Shown here in pieces: positions 4,192 to 9,910 of a DNA stretch of 64,000 nt; the stretch's first letter is position 1; the number at the start of each line of letters is the position of its first letter. The notes beneath the pieces were generated by a model that ran no database searches, was not told the origin of the DNA, and worked only from the letters and a program-made list of their open reading frames with translations. The translations under genes and the position numbers were made by a program. Location: sequence record KT895374.1; one strand, 5' to 3'.

Positions 4192-5442
4192 TTACTTTTT
4201 AATATCCTCTATAGTTTTGATGAGATCTCTTCTATCGTCCATTATATACTTTCTGATAAGGTTTAATCTTTTTAGATTCCCATAAATAATAATTGTATAC
4301 ATGACATTTTTTAGAGGATCTTTAGTTTTTAAGGTGGTGTTTTTCCAATCGACTTCAAAGAAACCTTCATCAAGCTCTTTGTTATCCAATAGGACTTTTA
4401 CATTAAATAATTCCTTGAGGTTTAATTTTGCTTTTATAGCTTCTTCAAGCACTTCCCTAATTTCAGGATCTAATAATCTCTCAAATTGAAGATAATCAAT
4501 TTCTGTATTTATATCAGGTTCATATCCTTTATATTTCAGGAGGTGCATATTATCAATTTGTTCTCTAATAAAATGTGTAGGTACTTGAAATTCATATTTC
4601 ATTTTTCCATCATCCTCTAGATCTAATGGGATGTCTGGTACATCATCTTTAATTTCCATCACAAAATTTGAATGACTCCAAAAATCAAAAGAAAAGTTAA
4701 ATTCAACTGTTGAATCTTTTATAACTAATCCCTCTGTATTAACTTCTACGGTAGGAATATCTGGAAAATGTGTTAGAATATTAGTTTTATAATTATAATA
4801 ATATTTACTAGTTCCTGAAGCAGTATCAATACTTTCGGATATACCATTATAAGAATTATCAAATAGGTATTCTTCTAACTTGTTACGATCTACTTGATTT
4901 TTAAGATTAAGATTTAATCTCTGTGCAATATAAGTAGTATAAAGTTTAGGAATTCTAGTCTGAAGTCTAACATCATTAAGATAGAATCGACCACCAACCT
5001 CAAAGTTTTGCCTAATATAATGCAAGACATTAAGGGCTGATAATTTTGTTTGTAATACAATCTTTACATTAAAATCCATTTTAATTCGATCTGGTATAGA
5101 ATAAATATAAATATTATTCTTCTCATCATATAAGACTCCATTATATTGCTTGTGTGGTTTTTTAAATGTAAAATATTGAGTAGTATGCCATTTTGGTAAG
5201 AGTTCCATAAAACTATCTTCAGCAGTGTATTGTGTATCAATAACTAATAATGGTTTACTAAGTTTAATTATCTTATCATCTTCTAATCTTACTTCATTTA
5301 ATGAGTCAATAATGTACGTATCTTTAAAAAAATTAGGTGGAAATACTTCTTGTAAGAAACTCCTAGCATAGCCAGTAGCATTTCCAATTAGAGATGAAAT
5401 AGACGATGATGCTTTACAAGAAATAATTTGGGTTTCCTTCAA
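4192..5442 (-). CDS. hypothetical protein, possibly a virion structural protein (416 aa)
   Basis: Long ORF preceded by a late-type AACA-N6-TA motif; structural role is inference only. Confidence 0.55.
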   Translation of the reverse strand: MKETQIISCKASSSISSLIGNATGYARSFLQEVFPPNFFKDTYIIDSLNEVRLEDDKIIKLSKPLLVIDTQYTAEDSFMELLPKWHTTQYFTFKKPHKQYNGVLYDEKNNIYIYSIPDRIKMDFNVKIVLQTKLSALNVLHYIRQNFEVGGRFYLNDVRLQTRIPKLYTTYIAQRLNLNLKNQVDRNKLEEYLFDNSYNGISESIDTASGTSKYYYNYKTNILTHFPDIPTVEVNTEGLVIKDSTVEFNFSFDFWSHSNFVMEIKDDVPDIPLDLEDDGKMKYEFQVPTHFIREQIDNMHLLKYKGYEPDINTEIDYLQFERLLDPEIREVLEEAIKAKLNLKELFNVKVLLDNKELDEGFFEVDWKNTTLKTKDPLKNVMYTIIIYGNLKRLNLIRKYIMDDRRDLIKTIEDIKK

Positions 5443-5490
5443 TTATATCACTTCCATATACTTAATATTGGTATGTTTTAGTATAAAAAA

Positions 5491-5515
5491 AAATAAGGGT
5501 ATATAACCCTTATTT
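5491..5515 (-). terminator. intrinsic terminator
   Basis: AAATAAGGGT-atata-ACCCTTATTT with an A-tract on its left. Confidence 0.75.
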
Positions 5516-5993
5516 AAACTAACTCCATTGAATTTTCTAGATTATTTAACTCTTCTAAAATTTCCCTTAATTCATTAATAATTGGTTTCTTCCAATATTT
5601 ATCAATACTTTTAAATAGATCCGATTTGAATTCCTTATTAATTTTCATTCGTTTTACTCTTTTAATGAAATTGTTAATATCGTCTTCCTCATCTAATGTA
5701 ATGTCTTCTAGTTCTTGATGTAAAATTGTTTGTAAATCTGGTGAAATGTCATAAATTGCAAAAATAGATTCTAGGCTTTCAAAACCAATAGCATAATCAA
5801 TATTTCCAATAGATTCTAATGAGCTAGGAACACTTCCAATAATATAATCTACATTCTTCCAGTTATCATAAAAATATTCCTTTACTTGCTCATTTCCAAA
5901 TTCAATATCTGTTACAGAATTTAATTTTTCTTTTAAGAGTAGTCCTTTAGATTCTAATTGATTCAATAGTTTATTAATTTTAGATTCTTGCAT
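5514..5993 (-). CDS. hypothetical acidic protein (159 aa)
   Basis: ORF with AAGGA RBS. Confidence 0.7.
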   Translation of the reverse strand: MQESKINKLLNQLESKGLLLKEKLNSVTDIEFGNEQVKEYFYDNWKNVDYIIGSVPSSLESIGNIDYAIGFESLESIFAIYDISPDLQTILHQELEDITLDEEDDINNFIKRVKRMKINKEFKSDLFKSIDKYWKKPIINELREILEELNNLENSMELV

Positions 5994-6014
5994 AATATAT
6001 TCATCCTTTGTTTT

Positions 6015-6677
6015 TTAATATAGTTTTTCTATAATAGGTATAAGTATTCTTGGTGATGCTATTCCTGTATTACTTATGGTATGTGTACTTCCTGTTATAT
6101 TAAATCTTTTTGTTTGCTCTTCTCCAAAATAGGTACAACTATGTGATTCAATCCATCCATACTTTTCAGTATATATTTCTATATCTAATTTCTTTAAATG
6201 ATATCCTTTATCTTTTATGGTCATATCCACTACACGATTTTTAATTTCTAATTCATCCAGAAATTCAATAGCATTATTTAATAGTAAATTAAAATCTTCC
6301 TCCCATTTATCTTTAGTAGTAAAACAAAATTGTTCTAATTTAATAAATTCTTCTAATCTTAAATTTTCAATTTCAATATTTTCTCTTCTGAAGCAGGTAT
6401 TTTGAGCATAGATTTTCATTGAATCAACTTTCTTATCTTGAAAATATTCTAAAATTCCCTGTTCAGCAGAACCAGCTAAAGCATTTCTTCTATCACTAAT
6501 GTGTAGTGAGTCTCTTCTGTCAAAACCCTGTTTATCAAGAGTTTCCCATTTTATTGCAGAAGGAACTGATAGATACTTAAATCCTTTAGAATCTAGTTTA
6601 TCTGAAAATCTCCTAAATAAATCTCTTTCTATTTTAGATAATTCAAAATCTAATGTGTTATTATACATTTTCTTCAC
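6015..6677 (-). CDS. seryl-tRNA synthetase-like class II catalytic core, lacking the N-terminal tRNA-binding coiled coil
   Basis: LAGSAEQ (TxE-like serine-binding loop), NTCFRRE (motif 2), LEEFIKLEQF, KLDIEI, IESHSC, HTISNTGIASPRIL (motif 3); only 220 aa. Confidence 0.8.
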   Translation of the reverse strand: MKKMYNNTLDFELSKIERDLFRRFSDKLDSKGFKYLSVPSAIKWETLDKQGFDRRDSLHISDRRNALAGSAEQGILEYFQDKKVDSMKIYAQNTCFRRENIEIENLRLEEFIKLEQFCFTTKDKWEEDFNLLLNNAIEFLDELEIKNRVVDMTIKDKGYHLKKLDIEIYTEKYGWIESHSCTYFGEEQTKRFNITGSTHTISNTGIASPRILIPIIEKLY

Positions 6678-6978
6678 TTTTAACTTTACTATTTAATTCT
6701 GCAAATTTTAATAATTCATTAAAATCCATATTATTATTTTCAGCAAATCCTTTAACTGCACCAATGATATCTGATAGCTCAATAGCTAACATCAAATATT
6801 GTTCTTGTTCTAATGCATCTTTAGCTTCTAAGACTTCTTCTTCAATTTTAGAGAACTCTCCATATTTACCTTTTTCAATTGCTCTTTTATGGTATCCTTT
6901 ATTCTTATTATTTTTACTACGATAATCTTTATCAAATATATGACTTTTATAAGGTACAGATACTTCTTCCATTTTCAT
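6661..6978 (-). CDS. MazG-like all-alpha nucleotide pyrophosphohydrolase
   Basis: SKIEEEVLEAKDA...IELSDIIGAV matches the EExxE...ExxD MazG pattern; overlaps the SerRS-like gene by 17 nt. Confidence 0.65.
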   Translation of the reverse strand: MKMEEVSVPYKSHIFDKDYRSKNNKNKGYHKRAIEKGKYGEFSKIEEEVLEAKDALEQEQYLMLAIELSDIIGAVKGFAENNNMDFNELLKFAELNSKVKSEENV

Positions 6979-6982
6979 AAGA

Positions 6983-7363
6983 TCATTCTCCTTTTATTTT
7001 CTTAATTAAACCATCTTTAATAGTTGCAGTATATTCCTCTTTATTCTGAATCATATTAAATAGCGACTCACTCTTGGTTTCAACCCAAACTTTATCATTA
7101 TCAATACTTACTTGTAATAGATATCTTTCACTTTCATTTTTATTTCTTTTAGGAATCAAATGCTTATTTTCAATAATTATATTTTTATCTTTAACTTCTA
7201 AATCTGAAATCTTTTGATTGTTTATAAACTGATTTTCTTCTGGTGGAAAAGATAATAATATCATGATAGTTAATAGAATAAATGATAAAACAATTAAAAT
7301 TATATACTTTATTGAAATCCTTTTATCTTTTACAATAGATCTTTTTGATATTCTAGTCTCCAA
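6983..7363 (-). CDS. single-pass membrane protein, paralogue of 8304..8606
   Basis: N-terminal hydrophobic helix; shared WVxTKSExL(F/Y)N...Y...IKDG(L/I)I. Confidence 0.7.
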   Translation of the reverse strand: METRISKRSIVKDKRISIKYIILIVLSFILLTIMILLSFPPEENQFINNQKISDLEVKDKNIIIENKHLIPKRNKNESERYLLQVSIDNDKVWVETKSESLFNMIQNKEEYTATIKDGLIKKIKGE

Positions 7364-7385
7364 AATAATCCCCCCGAATTACTTT

Positions 7386-7838
7386 TTAAATCTTTGAAAT
7401 AACATCTGACAGATATTGACCTTTATTTAATTTAATTAATTTGGGAAAGGTTTCGCTTTCAATCTCTTTAATAAATTTTTCCCAATTGTCATTAATAATT
7501 TTAGCAAATGCCTCAGTATTACCACGTTTTTTGATTCGCTCCATATATTCTTCTTTTAATTCAATAGAAGGATATACAATAGTGTAGTCCATTTTATTAT
7601 TTTCTAATTCTTTTCTAACTAGGTGATGTGTAGATATTAGAATATAATCAACCTTACCAATATTTTCCTTAATATGTTTAATATAATTATTTGGGAAATC
7701 AGGATTTCTTTTATCTGTTTTATCTACCCATGAAAAATCAATACTATCTGAATCTAATATTGAATAGTCATTATTATTCTTAAACAGACTACTCTTACCA
7801 ATAGCTGGAAAACCTGAAATAATTTTAGTTTCTTTCAT
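7386..7838 (-). CDS. P-loop NTPase, nucleotide-kinase-like
   Basis: N-terminal Walker A IISGFPAIGKS followed by ILDSDS. Confidence 0.65.
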   Translation of the reverse strand: MKETKIISGFPAIGKSSLFKNNNDYSILDSDSIDFSWVDKTDKRNPDFPNNYIKHIKENIGKVDYILISTHHLVRKELENNKMDYTIVYPSIELKEEYMERIKKRGNTEAFAKIINDNWEKFIKEIESETFPKLIKLNKGQYLSDVISKI

Positions 7839-7989
7839 TTTGATTTCCCTCCATACTATTATTTAATTTTGATAGTAAAATTTTTTTAAATGAATAGTCA
7901 TTAAAATTTTCAATGTTATTTTCTTTTTTGTTAGTTTTAATAATTTCAATATGTTTTAAATAATCTTTACCTGTAGTTACAAATATCAT
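7825..7989 (-). CDS. small hypothetical protein (54 aa), not in the ORF track
   Basis: GAGGAG RBS; fills the gap between 7838 and 7991. Confidence 0.5.
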   Translation of the reverse strand: MIFVTTGKDYLKHIEIIKTNKKENNIENFNDYSFKKILLSKLNNSMEGNQNERN

Positions 7990-7990
7990 A

Positions 7991-8242
7991 TTAAATTTTC
8001 TCCTCTCTTATAATTTTATCAATGGTTGCATGCATTGCATGTAAGTAAAATAATACATCTACAATTTCTCCATCCATTAATTTTTCTCTATAATCTTTAA
8101 ATTTTTTTAAATGTAAGATAATCTCATAATTATTTTCCTTTTCATTTTCTTTCTCCAATGAAAGATAGGAATTTTTTATTTTCTTATTTATTTCTTCAAT
8201 TCTTTTATTAGCAAACCATAGATCATCTCTCTTTTTTACCAT
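7991..8242 (-). CDS. hypothetical protein (83 aa)
   Basis: AAGGAG RBS. Confidence 0.65.
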   Translation of the reverse strand: MVKKRDDLWFANKRIEEINKKIKNSYLSLEKENEKENNYEIILHLKKFKDYREKLMDGEIVDVLFYLHAMHATIDKIIREEKI

Positions 8243-8259
8243 TAATGTATCTCCTTAAT

Positions 8260-8299
8260 AAAGATAACCTAGACTCAAATAAGAATCTAGGTTATCTTT
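8260..8299. terminator. inverted repeat terminator
   Basis: AAAGATAACCTAGA-N12-TCTAGGTTATCTTT. Confidence 0.7.
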
Positions 8300-8303
8300 T
8301 TAT

Positions 8304-8606
8304 TTATTCTTCAATAATACCATCTTTAATATTTAAATTATATTGATTTTTTTCATGTAGTTTATTATAAAGTTTTTCTGATTTTGTCATTACCCATTTT
8401 CCATCAATTTTAAAGTAGTACTCGTTATCTTCATCTTTTTTATGTTTAATTTTTTGTATTTTTTCCTCAATAGTTACCCTATCACTAAAAGTAACTTCAT
8501 CAGGCTCTAATTCACTTTGCTGTTTTATTTCAACCATTGTAATTATCATAACTAAAGATATAGCAATAATTATGATTGATAATGTAATTACTATTTTATT
8601 TAACAT
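8304..8606 (-). CDS. single-pass membrane protein, paralogue of 6983..7363
   Basis: N-terminal TM helix; KWVMTKSEKLYN...IKDGII. Confidence 0.7.
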   Translation of the reverse strand: MLNKIVITLSIIIIAISLVMIITMVEIKQQSELEPDEVTFSDRVTIEEKIQKIKHKKDEDNEYYFKIDGKWVMTKSEKLYNKLHEKNQYNLNIKDGIIEE

Positions 8607-8623: not shown

Positions 8624-9910
8624 TTAGTTGTTTAGTATATGAATTCCTAATTGCTGATCTTTTACTAAATCAAAATCACTATTGAATTCTCCATCATCCC
8701 TATTCACAATAAAGCTTTCTGGTGATAATTTTTTAAAGTGCTTATGAGCTTTAGGATCCATAACTCCAATAATATTTAAAACATCTCCGTCAAAATCTCC
8801 TGAGAAAGCAGATAAAAGGTTATTACTAATACCTAATGTTAGATCTTTATAGTCTTTTTTAACTACTGCTACTTTTACATATAAAATACTACCTAATGAA
8901 ATTGTCGGATTCCTATTAAGTAAGAATCTTAAACCATTTTTAGTTTTCTTTACTAACTCCATCATAAAGTTATAGAATTCTTCATTATAACCTAGCATTC
9001 CTTTTTCCCATTCTGTTGTTGCTTGATTATAATTTATACCTTTTACTTTACTAATTAAATTGATAATTTGAAATTTATATAGTTCTCCAAATGTCCTATA
9101 AGGCATTGCTACCTCATCAATCTGATAAGTAGTTAAAGGAGTAATTACATTACGAGCACTAAAATCTAATCTTGATCCGTAAATATCTCTACGAATTAAA
9201 CCCTTCTTACCTTTTAGTTGATCAATAATTTTTTTATGAACAATATTTGTATAAGACTGAATTTGATATAAGAGAGATAATTTTAATAAATCAATATTCT
9301 CTTTGTTCTCAATAACTTTATCTTTAATTTCTTTTGAATAAAGAATTAAGAAATTATAATCATTATTAATTTCATCAAATATTAAAGTATTTCCCCTCAT
9401 TGTAGCAGGTCTAAGTTTAGATGAGTATACTGGAAATTTATTAATAAAAATAAGATCATTATGTTTCGCTAGAAAATCAAACTCTTTTTGATACTTATTT
9501 TTATTTGTATATTCCTCCATCAAATTCCAAAATCTTTCTTTAAATTCAATCAGACCAATATCAAAGTTAGGATCTCTATTTTCATCTTCTTCATTAATAG
9601 GTTCTTGAACTTTCTCGCCACTATGATCAATTGGTATATTAAAGTTAATGATGTTATTAACTTTTGGAATACATTTACGCACTAACTCAAATAATGCTGG
9701 ATTAATAACATAGTATGGATCAAAATTAATCCATCCAATCGTTCCAATATCCTTATCATTATCACTTTCATTAAAACTTCCAAAAATTCTTTCTGAATAA
9801 ATTCCATCATCTAGGAATTCATTACTGTTGTTAATTGATTTTTCATTTGTAATTAAATTTTCTTCATTGTAAATCTTGTCATAATCAATTAAAGAAATTT
9901 TTTTTCCCAA
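8624..9910 (-). CDS. phage multisubunit RNA polymerase beta' subunit, N-terminal/catalytic part
   Basis: GIYSERIFG, LKGKKGLIRRDIYGSRLDFSARNVITP, LLNRNPT and catalytic FSGDFDGD; TTG start with GGGAGG RBS; 428 aa, typical of split jumbo-phage RNAPs. Confidence 0.92.
   Translation of the reverse strand: MGKKISLIDYDKIYNEENLITNEKSINNSNEFLDDGIYSERIFGSFNESDNDKDIGTIGWINFDPYYVINPALFELVRKCIPKVNNIINFNIPIDHSGEKVQEPINEEDENRDPNFDIGLIEFKERFWNLMEEYTNKNKYQKEFDFLAKHNDLIFINKFPVYSSKLRPATMRGNTLIFDEINNDYNFLILYSKEIKDKVIENKENIDLLKLSLLYQIQSYTNIVHKKIIDQLKGKKGLIRRDIYGSRLDFSARNVITPLTTYQIDEVAMPYRTFGELYKFQIINLISKVKGINYNQATTEWEKGMLGYNEEFYNFMMELVKKTKNGLRFLLNRNPTISLGSILYVKVAVVKKDYKDLTLGISNNLLSAFSGDFDGDVLNIIGVMDPKAHKHFKKLSPESFIVNRDDGEFNSDFDLVKDQQLGIHILNN

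Follow-up and report, generated by a model that had tools for sequence, protein, structure and literature searches.

Two overlapping genes of Bacillus phage vB_BpuM-BpSp (BpSp), gp011 and gp012, form a conserved phage gene pair in which an arm-less seryl-tRNA synthetase (SerRS)-type core adjoins a small MazG/HisE-like protein. The pair lies on the minus strand of the stretch analysed here (the window), positions 1-64000 of the BpSp genome (KT895374.1, 255,569 bp, genus Takahashivirus); bases 5400-8300, compared with that record, matched it with 100% identity and without any shift in coordinates. gp011 (6015..6677 or 6015..6668, depending on the start codon) encodes the class II catalytic core, and gp012 (6661..6978) encodes the partner of 105 amino acids (aa), a predicted all-alpha protein assigned to PHROG 6408. 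The pairing of core and MazG-like gene is real: it recurs across very different phages and is not due to chance. Our tentative reading, to which we give a little less than an even chance, is that gp011 and gp012 constitute a serine-adenylating enzyme with a nucleotide pyrophosphatase-type partner, in which serine would be passed to a non-tRNA acceptor to give a serine-nucleotide product.

A preliminary description of the window had reported a 220-aa SerRS core with four active-site motifs and no coiled coil, and closer analysis bore this out. GSAE (residues 69-72), CFRRE (95-99), ESHSC (177-181) and TGIASPR (204-210) were all located in the 220-aa open reading frame (ORF). Against the serS model TIGR00414, gp011 aligned to model positions 172-400 of 418 only (E = 6.4e-18), with a score of 65 bits that lies under the curated cutoff of 301.65, and the match to PHROG 4806 reached 4.6e-56. 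A profile of 33 gp011 relatives matched residues 159-396 of Thermus thermophilus SerRS (1ser) with E = 1.4e-22. In this alignment T. thermophilus T225, E227, R256 and E258 correspond to gp011 S70, E72, R97 and E99; R271, F275, E279 and E345 to R107, F111, E115 and E177; and S348, T380 and R386 to S180, T204 and R210. From SerRS structures, we take the listed Thermus residues to be those that bind ATP, Mg and the serine hydroxyl. Most of the equivalent positions are invariant across the 33 relatives, as is the motif-1 proline P39, and all catalytic positions, among them the arginines of motifs 2 and 3 and the E/S pair that binds Mg, show no or almost no variation despite family identities of 45-65%. 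The AlphaFold model of gp011 had a predicted local distance difference test (pLDDT) value of 90.8, and the top 50 fold matches in the PDB were all SerRS catalytic domains (query-normalised template modelling scores of 0.82-0.88), including 9qof, an E. coli SerRS lacking its arm in complex with an analogue of seryl-adenylate.

Other features of canonical SerRS are missing from gp011. There is no N-terminal coiled-coil arm, since gp011 begins where T. thermophilus SerRS has residue 159 and the AlphaFold model has no helical arm. Also missing are the first ~55 residues of the canonical core (equivalent to ~100-158), part of the motif-2 loop and part of the C-terminal hairpin. Motif-2 loops in the family have 7-9 residues and a mean net charge of 0 (28 distinct loops), whereas those of canonical SerRS have 13 residues, a conserved GxxGKDxKG-like pattern and a mean charge of +2 (17 distinct loops). 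Bacterial SerRS (1ser/1sry, 9qof) is thus the best match of gp011 in both sequence and structure and has motifs 1-3 in common with it, but gp011 has a motif-2 loop that is 4-6 residues shorter and a shorter C-terminal hairpin, and it falls in a clade of its own. Taken together, these comparisons show gp011 to be a SerRS-derived class II catalytic core with an intact ATP/serine pocket, and not a canonical SerRS.

To ask how widely the core is accompanied by a gp012-like gene, 109 loci were taken from viral, genome and metagenome collections and all of their ORFs were scored with family hidden Markov models (HMMs). The BpSp-type cores (218-251 aa) formed 32 clusters at 85% identity, 26 of them with more than 1 kb of upstream DNA. 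A gp012-like gene was found upstream on the same strand in 25 of these 26 dereplicated lineages, and also in three further clusters with little upstream DNA. Control genes from the same scans, 38 full-length SerRS genes mostly from candidate-phyla bacteria, had no gp012-like gene nearby (0/38). Apart from a radical S-adenosylmethionine (SAM) gene in a subset, no further neighbour was conserved across the core loci. The same pair occurs in phage G (gp286/gp287) and in an uncultured 485-kb phage. In the latter (LR745208.1, locus L003:5870-6462), the core is spread over two frames, with the N-terminal part in 5870-6202 and the C-terminal part in 6142-6462, while the upstream partner is intact; the split is either an assembly frameshift or a pseudogene.

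A shorter form of the core extends the pairing to many cultured phages. In phi92, gp197 (PHROG 6408, like gp012) is followed by gp196 (190 aa, PHROG 4806, like gp011) with a 4-nt overlap, so that families, order and adjacency are those of the BpSp pair. The phi92-type cores keep SAEQ, CYRTE, KLE and TGIAEPR motifs but are shorter (180-195 aa) and form a more divergent sister clade, whereas BpSp, phage G and many metagenomic huge phages have the ~220-aa form. The short core form (PHROG 4806) is present in 273 phage records and the gp012-like gene (PHROG 6408) in 217, and the organism counts of the two families mirror each other (Escherichia 112/113, Caulobacter 13/13, Pectobacterium 10/10, Cronobacter 8/8). 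In the records common to both tables (phi92, VEcB, inny, 92CQ and MRostami-2023b), the coordinates of the two families adjoin. Carriers of the short form include phi92/rV5-like, Acinetobacter T4-like, phiCbK-like and Microcystis phages. The idea that gp012 is a generic, independent phage MazG was dropped, since the 217 phage records with a gp012-like gene carry an adjoining divergent short core.

The gp012-family HMM located the partner upstream of the core in Brevundimonas phage Kikimora. In Acinetobacter phage Octan the partner forms the N-terminal domain of a 207-aa protein that lies upstream of the core, and in Microcystis phage MaMV-DC the C-terminal 75 residues of the core protein itself (gp129). 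Fusions of module components follow three independent architectures, and the MazG-like domain and the core are joined in both orders: MazG-like then core in a 352-aa protein (P0154) carried by two contigs, of which one measures 397 kb; the reverse order in Microcystis phages (MaMV-DC gp129); and radical SAM then MazG-like in a 331-aa protein directly upstream of the core in dozens of clusters. The association first noticed in a single window is therefore upheld by 25 of 26 lineages, by fusions and by the diversity of the phages involved, and the spread of the module and its radical SAM variant goes beyond what that window could show.

The identity of the partner was approached by several methods. 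The conserved domain of gp012 spans residues ~28-103, and the N-terminal 27 residues are unconserved and modelled at low confidence. Across 15-18 relatives, H30, G37, G40, S43, K44, E47, E48, E51, A52, D54, A55, E67, L68, D70, G73 and A74 are invariant. Within this set, E47-E48-x-x-E51 and E67-x-x-D70 make up the EExxE...ExxD pattern of all-alpha nucleoside triphosphate (NTP) pyrophosphohydrolases, which gp012 has in common with MazG, HisE (phosphoribosyl-ATP pyrophosphohydrolase, PRA-PH), T4 gp56-type dCTPase and MazZ. The HisE model TIGR03188 matched 12 of 18 family members, with a best E value of 6.5e-4. The gp012 model has three helices, with pLDDT above 90 over residues 40-100, and its best Foldseek matches in the PDB were almost exclusively MazG proteins and phosphoribosyl-ATP pyrophosphatases (probability 0.8-0.99). 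A PDB profile search with the gp012 family gave no match. In a viral structure library, family members came first, followed by many NTP pyrophosphatase (NTP-PPase)/MazG proteins with scores in the Foldseek range. The annotators of phi92 and of Acinetobacter phages had independently named gp012 homologues MazG-like. Relative to other all-alpha NTP-PPases, the conserved domain of gp012 is small (~75 residues, three predicted helices); unlike MazG and HisE, it has a family-specific N-terminal GxHxxxIxKGxxGxxSK segment and an obligate link to a SerRS-like core. We consider "MazG/HisE-like" the best description of gp012, with family membership unproven, as the single methods are weak but concordant. 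The preliminary claim that the start of gp011 overlaps a MazG-like gene stands in this sense, with an overlap of 8 or 17 nt.

We also considered whether gp012 might be a split-off SerRS arm. This was rejected on the invariant acidic MazG-type motif and on the three short helices, which include no long coiled coil; its position at the C-terminus of the core in the Microcystis phage fusion also speaks against it.

To examine the history of the cores, 75 catalytic domains were placed in a maximum-likelihood tree. In it, one branch with support of 90/87 sets apart the cores of the long BpSp type, another with 100/100 those of the short phi92 type and a third with 95/95 canonical SerRS, and family members score 120-340 bits where canonical SerRS reach 117 or less. 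The separate clades and the bit-score gap argue that the arm-less cores represent old phage lineages and not recent truncations of host genes.

These findings bear on a first alternative, that the core is a minimalist but genuine SerRS. It would charge host tRNA-Ser through acceptor-end contacts only and so boost Ser-tRNA, with the partner acting, for instance, as a structural or RNA-binding adaptor. Full conservation of the serine- and ATP-binding residues and of the motif-1 proline fits such an enzyme, databases label the core SerRS, and in phi92-like phages, and in no others, a YqeY homologue is the next gene after the core (1ng6, B. subtilis YqeY, E = 1.1e-4). In phi92 itself this is gp195 (locus L115:4349-4783), a stand-alone YqeY homologue with a GatB C-terminal-type domain, a domain type known to assist tRNA binding. 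On the other side, the arm is missing and the motif-2 loop is short and uncharged, and in E. coli SerRS removal of the arm cuts charging by orders of magnitude, whereas activation remains intact. ARAGORN found no tRNA or tmRNA gene anywhere in the 255.6-kb BpSp genome. Kikimora retains a full-length SerRS, inside the canonical clade, alongside its short core with partner; since one phage carries both, it is unlikely that the two do the same job. The YqeY family, with 152 phage records, differs from the core in distribution (many are Vibrio phages) and is absent from BpSp. A charging enzyme would also leave the obligate, fusable MazG-like partner with its acidic metal site without a reason. We regard a minimalist SerRS as unlikely, though less so than the other alternatives. 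Separately, a genome free of tRNA genes is unusual for a jumbo phage. Neither YqeY nor the BpSp gene gp013 qualified as a conserved third component, as neither is conserved beside the pair.

Because a MazG/HisE-like partner almost always adjoins the core or is fused to it, we favour a serine/nucleotide module over an ordinary tRNA synthetase. In this proposal gp011 would activate L-serine, or a very close analogue, with ATP to form seryl-adenylate, without canonical recognition of tRNA-Ser. The seryl group would then be handed to a small acceptor held or produced by the gp012-type partner. The most economical guess for this acceptor is a nucleotide: gp012 might, for example, convert an NTP to a nucleoside monophosphate (NMP) that would stand in for the adenosine 5'-phosphate at the end of tRNA. 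The reaction would yield a nucleotide that is aminoacylated or conjugated with serine. About a third of lineages, not including BpSp, also have a radical SAM enzyme, in some cases fused to the MazG-like domain, which may add a further step. The module would act in the nucleotide and replication gene context of large virulent phages, outside the translation apparatus. A more specific version, in which the pair would be a nucleotide-tailoring machine of a new kind, holds that the core aminoacylates a free nucleotide supplied by the fused or bound MazG-like partner, with the NMP serving as a one-residue "tRNA"; the conjugate would be a metabolite, a signal mimic or a polymerase-directed agent, elaborated by the radical SAM enzyme in some lineages. 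Put this precisely, the idea is speculative and in our view unlikely.

Several observations weigh against the proposal of a serine/nucleotide module. The TIGR03188 score of gp012 is 19.9 bits, under the cutoff of 42.7, its Foldseek E values are 0.4-3, and its model shows three helices where four are expected. A pyrophosphatase that releases pyrophosphate, placed beside an adenylating enzyme that pyrophosphate inhibits, is not an obvious fit. The protein next to the core in phi92-like phages is YqeY-like and hence of a tRNA-binding type. Finally, PylRS catalytic domains and similar minimal class II enzymes manage to charge tRNA although they have no large extra domains, so a missing arm does not by itself imply loss of tRNA charging.

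An intact adenylation site coupled with a pyrophosphohydrolase-type protein also suggests a dinucleoside polyphosphate or alarmone module. Here seryl-adenylate would react with an NTP or with guanosine tetraphosphate (ppGpp) to give dinucleoside tetraphosphate (Ap4N-type) compounds, as LysU and other class II enzymes do, and the MazG-like partner would shape or degrade Ap4N or (p)ppGpp, to cap RNA or to blunt the stringent response. Synthesis of Ap4A from aminoacyl-adenylates is established chemistry for class II enzymes. To judge by the reference list of one study (PMC8953757), a link between phage MazG proteins and alarmones has been under discussion for a long time. Making a product and then hydrolysing it within one fused protein would be futile, however, and the radical SAM variant has no place in such a scheme. 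Both the synthesis of these compounds by the core and their processing by the partner strike us as rather improbable. Of the roles put forward in the preliminary description, transfer to a nucleotide, Ap4N or alarmone chemistry and a decoy against translation-targeting defences all have the standing of guesses.

The core might instead be a non-catalytic regulatory subunit of the kind represented by HisZ or SLIMP, sensing serine or ATP and regulating the MazG-like enzyme. Histidine synthesis offers a suggestive parallel, since the class II paralogue HisZ functions there at the step that precedes the HisE pyrophosphatase. Part of the catalytic residues is usually lost in regulatory paralogues, whereas those of the phage cores are all invariant or nearly so, and we judge this role quite improbable.

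A further hint on the chemistry comes from the radical SAM component of the module. In 11 of 32 lineages the partner either is fused to, or is separated from the core by, a ~265-aa radical SAM protein that carries a CX3CX2C cluster motif and the motif SGNGEPS, and the fusion with the MazG-like domain is common among the 242 radical SAM relatives found. No homologue was detected in deposited phages, BpSp and phage G included. Naming the protein as a known family was not possible, since its similarity to many radical SAM families is confined to their generic N-terminal part. At two loci (L005:5172-5950 and L021:4982-5972) the radical SAM gene is split into two or three ORFs while core and partner are intact, which is consistent with a dispensable step or with ongoing loss. 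Bacterial cousins (277 aa, ~40% identity) on a metagenome contig (L119:2569-5834) overlap the end of a gene in which a PnuC-type nicotinamide-riboside transporter is joined with a nucleoside deoxyribosyltransferase-like domain, and are preceded by a Ham1 NTP pyrophosphatase and an NrtR-like regulator. This gene set looks like an undescribed nucleoside salvage operon, and these neighbours give another hint of a nucleoside or nucleotide substrate.

A radical SAM enzyme beside a synthetase-like core also raises the possibility of protein aminoacylation. Serine would be transferred to the gp012-like partner or to a host factor, as in the modification of elongation factor P (EF-P) by EpmA or in the reactions of ligases that join amino acids to carrier proteins (aa:CP ligases), and the radical SAM enzyme would carry out an EpmB-like step. 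In the cases known, the gene for the acceptor adjoins that of the aminoacyl-tRNA synthetase (aaRS) paralogue (PMC9437257). The invariant gp012 residues H30, S43 and K44, which lie outside the acidic motif, would suit an acceptor, and six of ten radical SAM members have weak EpmB matches. These matches are limited to the generic cluster-binding N-terminus and are no better than those to NrdG, viperin or HxsC, and no more than 11 of 32 lineages have the radical SAM gene. With its invariant EExxE...ExxD motif, gp012 looks like an enzyme and not a passive acceptor, and no carrier-protein or phosphopantetheinyl-transferase genes are conserved nearby. We think a protein acceptor improbable.

Comparison with the two systems that inspire this alternative sharpens the differences. 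EpmA (PoxA/GenX) and EpmB likewise combine a class II aaRS core lacking a tRNA-recognition domain with a radical SAM enzyme, but EpmA is derived from LysRS and uses EF-P as acceptor, whereas the phage radical SAM protein belongs to a new 265-aa family with generic similarity. The aa:CP ligases of Bradyrhizobium and Agrobacterium, too, are adenylating enzymes of SerRS-like type without an arm, and a neighbouring gene encodes their acceptor, which is not a tRNA. They derive from the zinc-dependent, methanogen-type SerRS and lie beside carrier-protein genes. At E <= 0.01, the family profile matched only bacterial-, eukaryotic- and Pyrococcus-type SerRS and PylRS in the PDB, and neither an aa:CP ligase nor the M. 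barkeri (methanogen-type) SerRS. A zinc site is not expected in gp011, because the equivalents of E279 and T380, which bind the serine hydroxyl, are kept. The gp011 core is thus of the bacterial type, and its conserved neighbour is MazG/HisE-like instead of a carrier protein; the analogy to aa:CP ligases drawn in the preliminary description survives as a functional one only.

The genes around the pair are largely those of nucleotide metabolism and replication. NrdD adjoins the pair in phi92, and primase and SbcCD make up a replication context. In phage RXM, ribonucleotide reductase, ThyX and a deoxynucleoside monophosphate kinase are found in the context (PMC8953757). In phage G (L002:1-4325, 202662-207372), the pair lies just downstream of a nicotinamide adenine dinucleotide (NAD) synthesis block, comprising nicotinate phosphoribosyltransferase, nicotinate mononucleotide adenylyltransferase and NAD synthetase, and of a KptA-like RNA 2'-phosphotransferase, a neighbourhood that is not conserved in other loci.

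Location among such genes would also suit hypermodification of virion DNA, in which a serine-derived base is made at the nucleotide level in the manner of the T4 dCTPase, hydroxymethylase and kinase. A pyrophosphatase and a ligase-type enzyme, with a radical SAM enzyme in some lineages, resemble known modification pathways, and MazZ beside PurZ in Z-genome phages is, like gp012, a small phage pyrophosphatase next to a ligase-type enzyme. The BASEL study, however, reports Vequintavirinae and phi92-like phages, which carry the pair, to be "exceptionally susceptible" to restriction-modification systems (PMC8594841), and this makes protective DNA modification unlikely as a general explanation. In BpSp, the P-loop gene near the pair is not co-conserved with it, and BpSp is a PBS1/AR9-type phage with a uracil-DNA glycosylase inhibitor (Ugi) gene, which already implies another DNA peculiarity. 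A hypermodified base at the nucleotide level is in our estimate very unlikely.

Membership in a known anti-phage defence system was rejected as well. Searches with PADLOC defence models gave no meaningful match for the core, the partner or the fusions, and the radical SAM enzyme had only a weak pVip match (1.8e-5).

Individual genes of the pair have been annotated before, but inconsistently: the core as seryl- or histidyl-tRNA synthetase, and the partner as hypothetical or MazG-like. In KT895374.1, gp011 is labelled seryl-tRNA synthetase (6015-6668, minus strand) and gp012 is hypothetical; in phi92, gp197 already carries the annotation of a MazG-type fold and gp196 that of a putative SerRS. 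The searchable literature contained no description of the conserved, fused pair as a module, nor of the radical SAM variant, and the one paper that names both genes treats core and partner separately. Neither gp011 nor gp012 is mentioned in the proteomics paper on BpSp. New chemistry has come to light again and again in truncated aaRS paralogues, as in aa:CP ligases, EpmA, AsnA and HisZ. For SerRS, the paralogues named in reviews on the subject are SerRS2, SLIMP and aa:CP ligases and no others (PMC9437257). The phage core, at about 180-230 aa, is among the smallest class II cores known, and the module is present in several hundred cultured phages, E. coli phages such as phi92 and rV5-like phages included, as well as in huge phages. 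Solving the module would correct the widespread mislabelling as seryl- or histidyl-tRNA synthetase, would probe how far a synthetase can be pared down and still be active, and may bring to light a new nucleotide metabolite of phages or a new mechanism of host takeover. The fusable partner offers a concrete, assayable two-protein system.

At the BpSp locus, gp011 has 220 aa when read from GTG 6677 and 217 aa from the annotated ATG 6668. The gp012 stop codon (TAA, 6663-6661) lies within gp011, so the overlap (6661..6677, minus strand) is 17 nt with the GTG start and 8 nt with the ATG start. Overlaps of -1, -4 and -8 nt recur at other loci carrying the pair, and because the 8-nt overlap recurs in unrelated loci, ATG 6668 is the likelier start. 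Such an overlap is an arrangement typical of translational coupling, which may operate here. The genes from gp014 to gp010 are closely packed on the minus strand. gp010 (5514..5993, minus strand, PHROG 21807) lies downstream of the pair and is apparently co-transcribed with it. Directly 3' of gp010 is a hairpin resembling an intrinsic terminator (5491..5515, minus strand), with a 10-bp stem followed by a T-run; two terminator-like sites were found versus 0.4 expected, and the hairpin at 5515-5491 is the probable end of the transcription unit that holds the pair. gp010 was rejected as a conserved third component, as it is not kept beside the pair in other loci.

Upstream of gp012 lie gp013 (6983-7363, minus strand) and gp014 (7386-7838, minus strand), a P-loop gene of PHROG 4182. 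The preliminary description had placed a P-loop gene about 400 nt upstream; the position is right (407 nt from gp012), but the implied link to the module fell away, and gp014 was rejected as a member because it is absent from all other pair loci. Its family occurs in another set of phages, among them T5-like Salmonella phages and Aeromonas phages, and gp014 had no match in the PDB or NCBIfam. gp013 and gp017 (8304-8606, minus strand) are paralogues with 31-39% identity over ~60-100 residues, small proteins that each have an N-terminal hydrophobic segment. gp018 (8624-9910, minus strand) encodes a 428-aa, fragment-sized homologue of the RNA polymerase (RNAP) beta' subunit with the catalytic DFDGD motif. 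Other split RNAP beta/beta' genes are dispersed in the BpSp genome (gp155, gp212, gp219, gp245, gp250 and gp303), as in AR9-type phages, which have two multisubunit RNAPs.

Outside the window, gp259 (KT895374.1 202377-202742) encodes the Ugi protein. Takahashivirus is the PBS1/AR9 genus, and uracil probably replaces thymine in BpSp DNA. The tblastn matches for gp011 did not include AR9 or PBS1, and the pair is therefore not core to that uracil-DNA lifestyle. Across the whole window, G+C content is only 22-34%, and GC skew and coding strand change sign near 30 kb and again near 40-42 kb, remaining positive thereafter.

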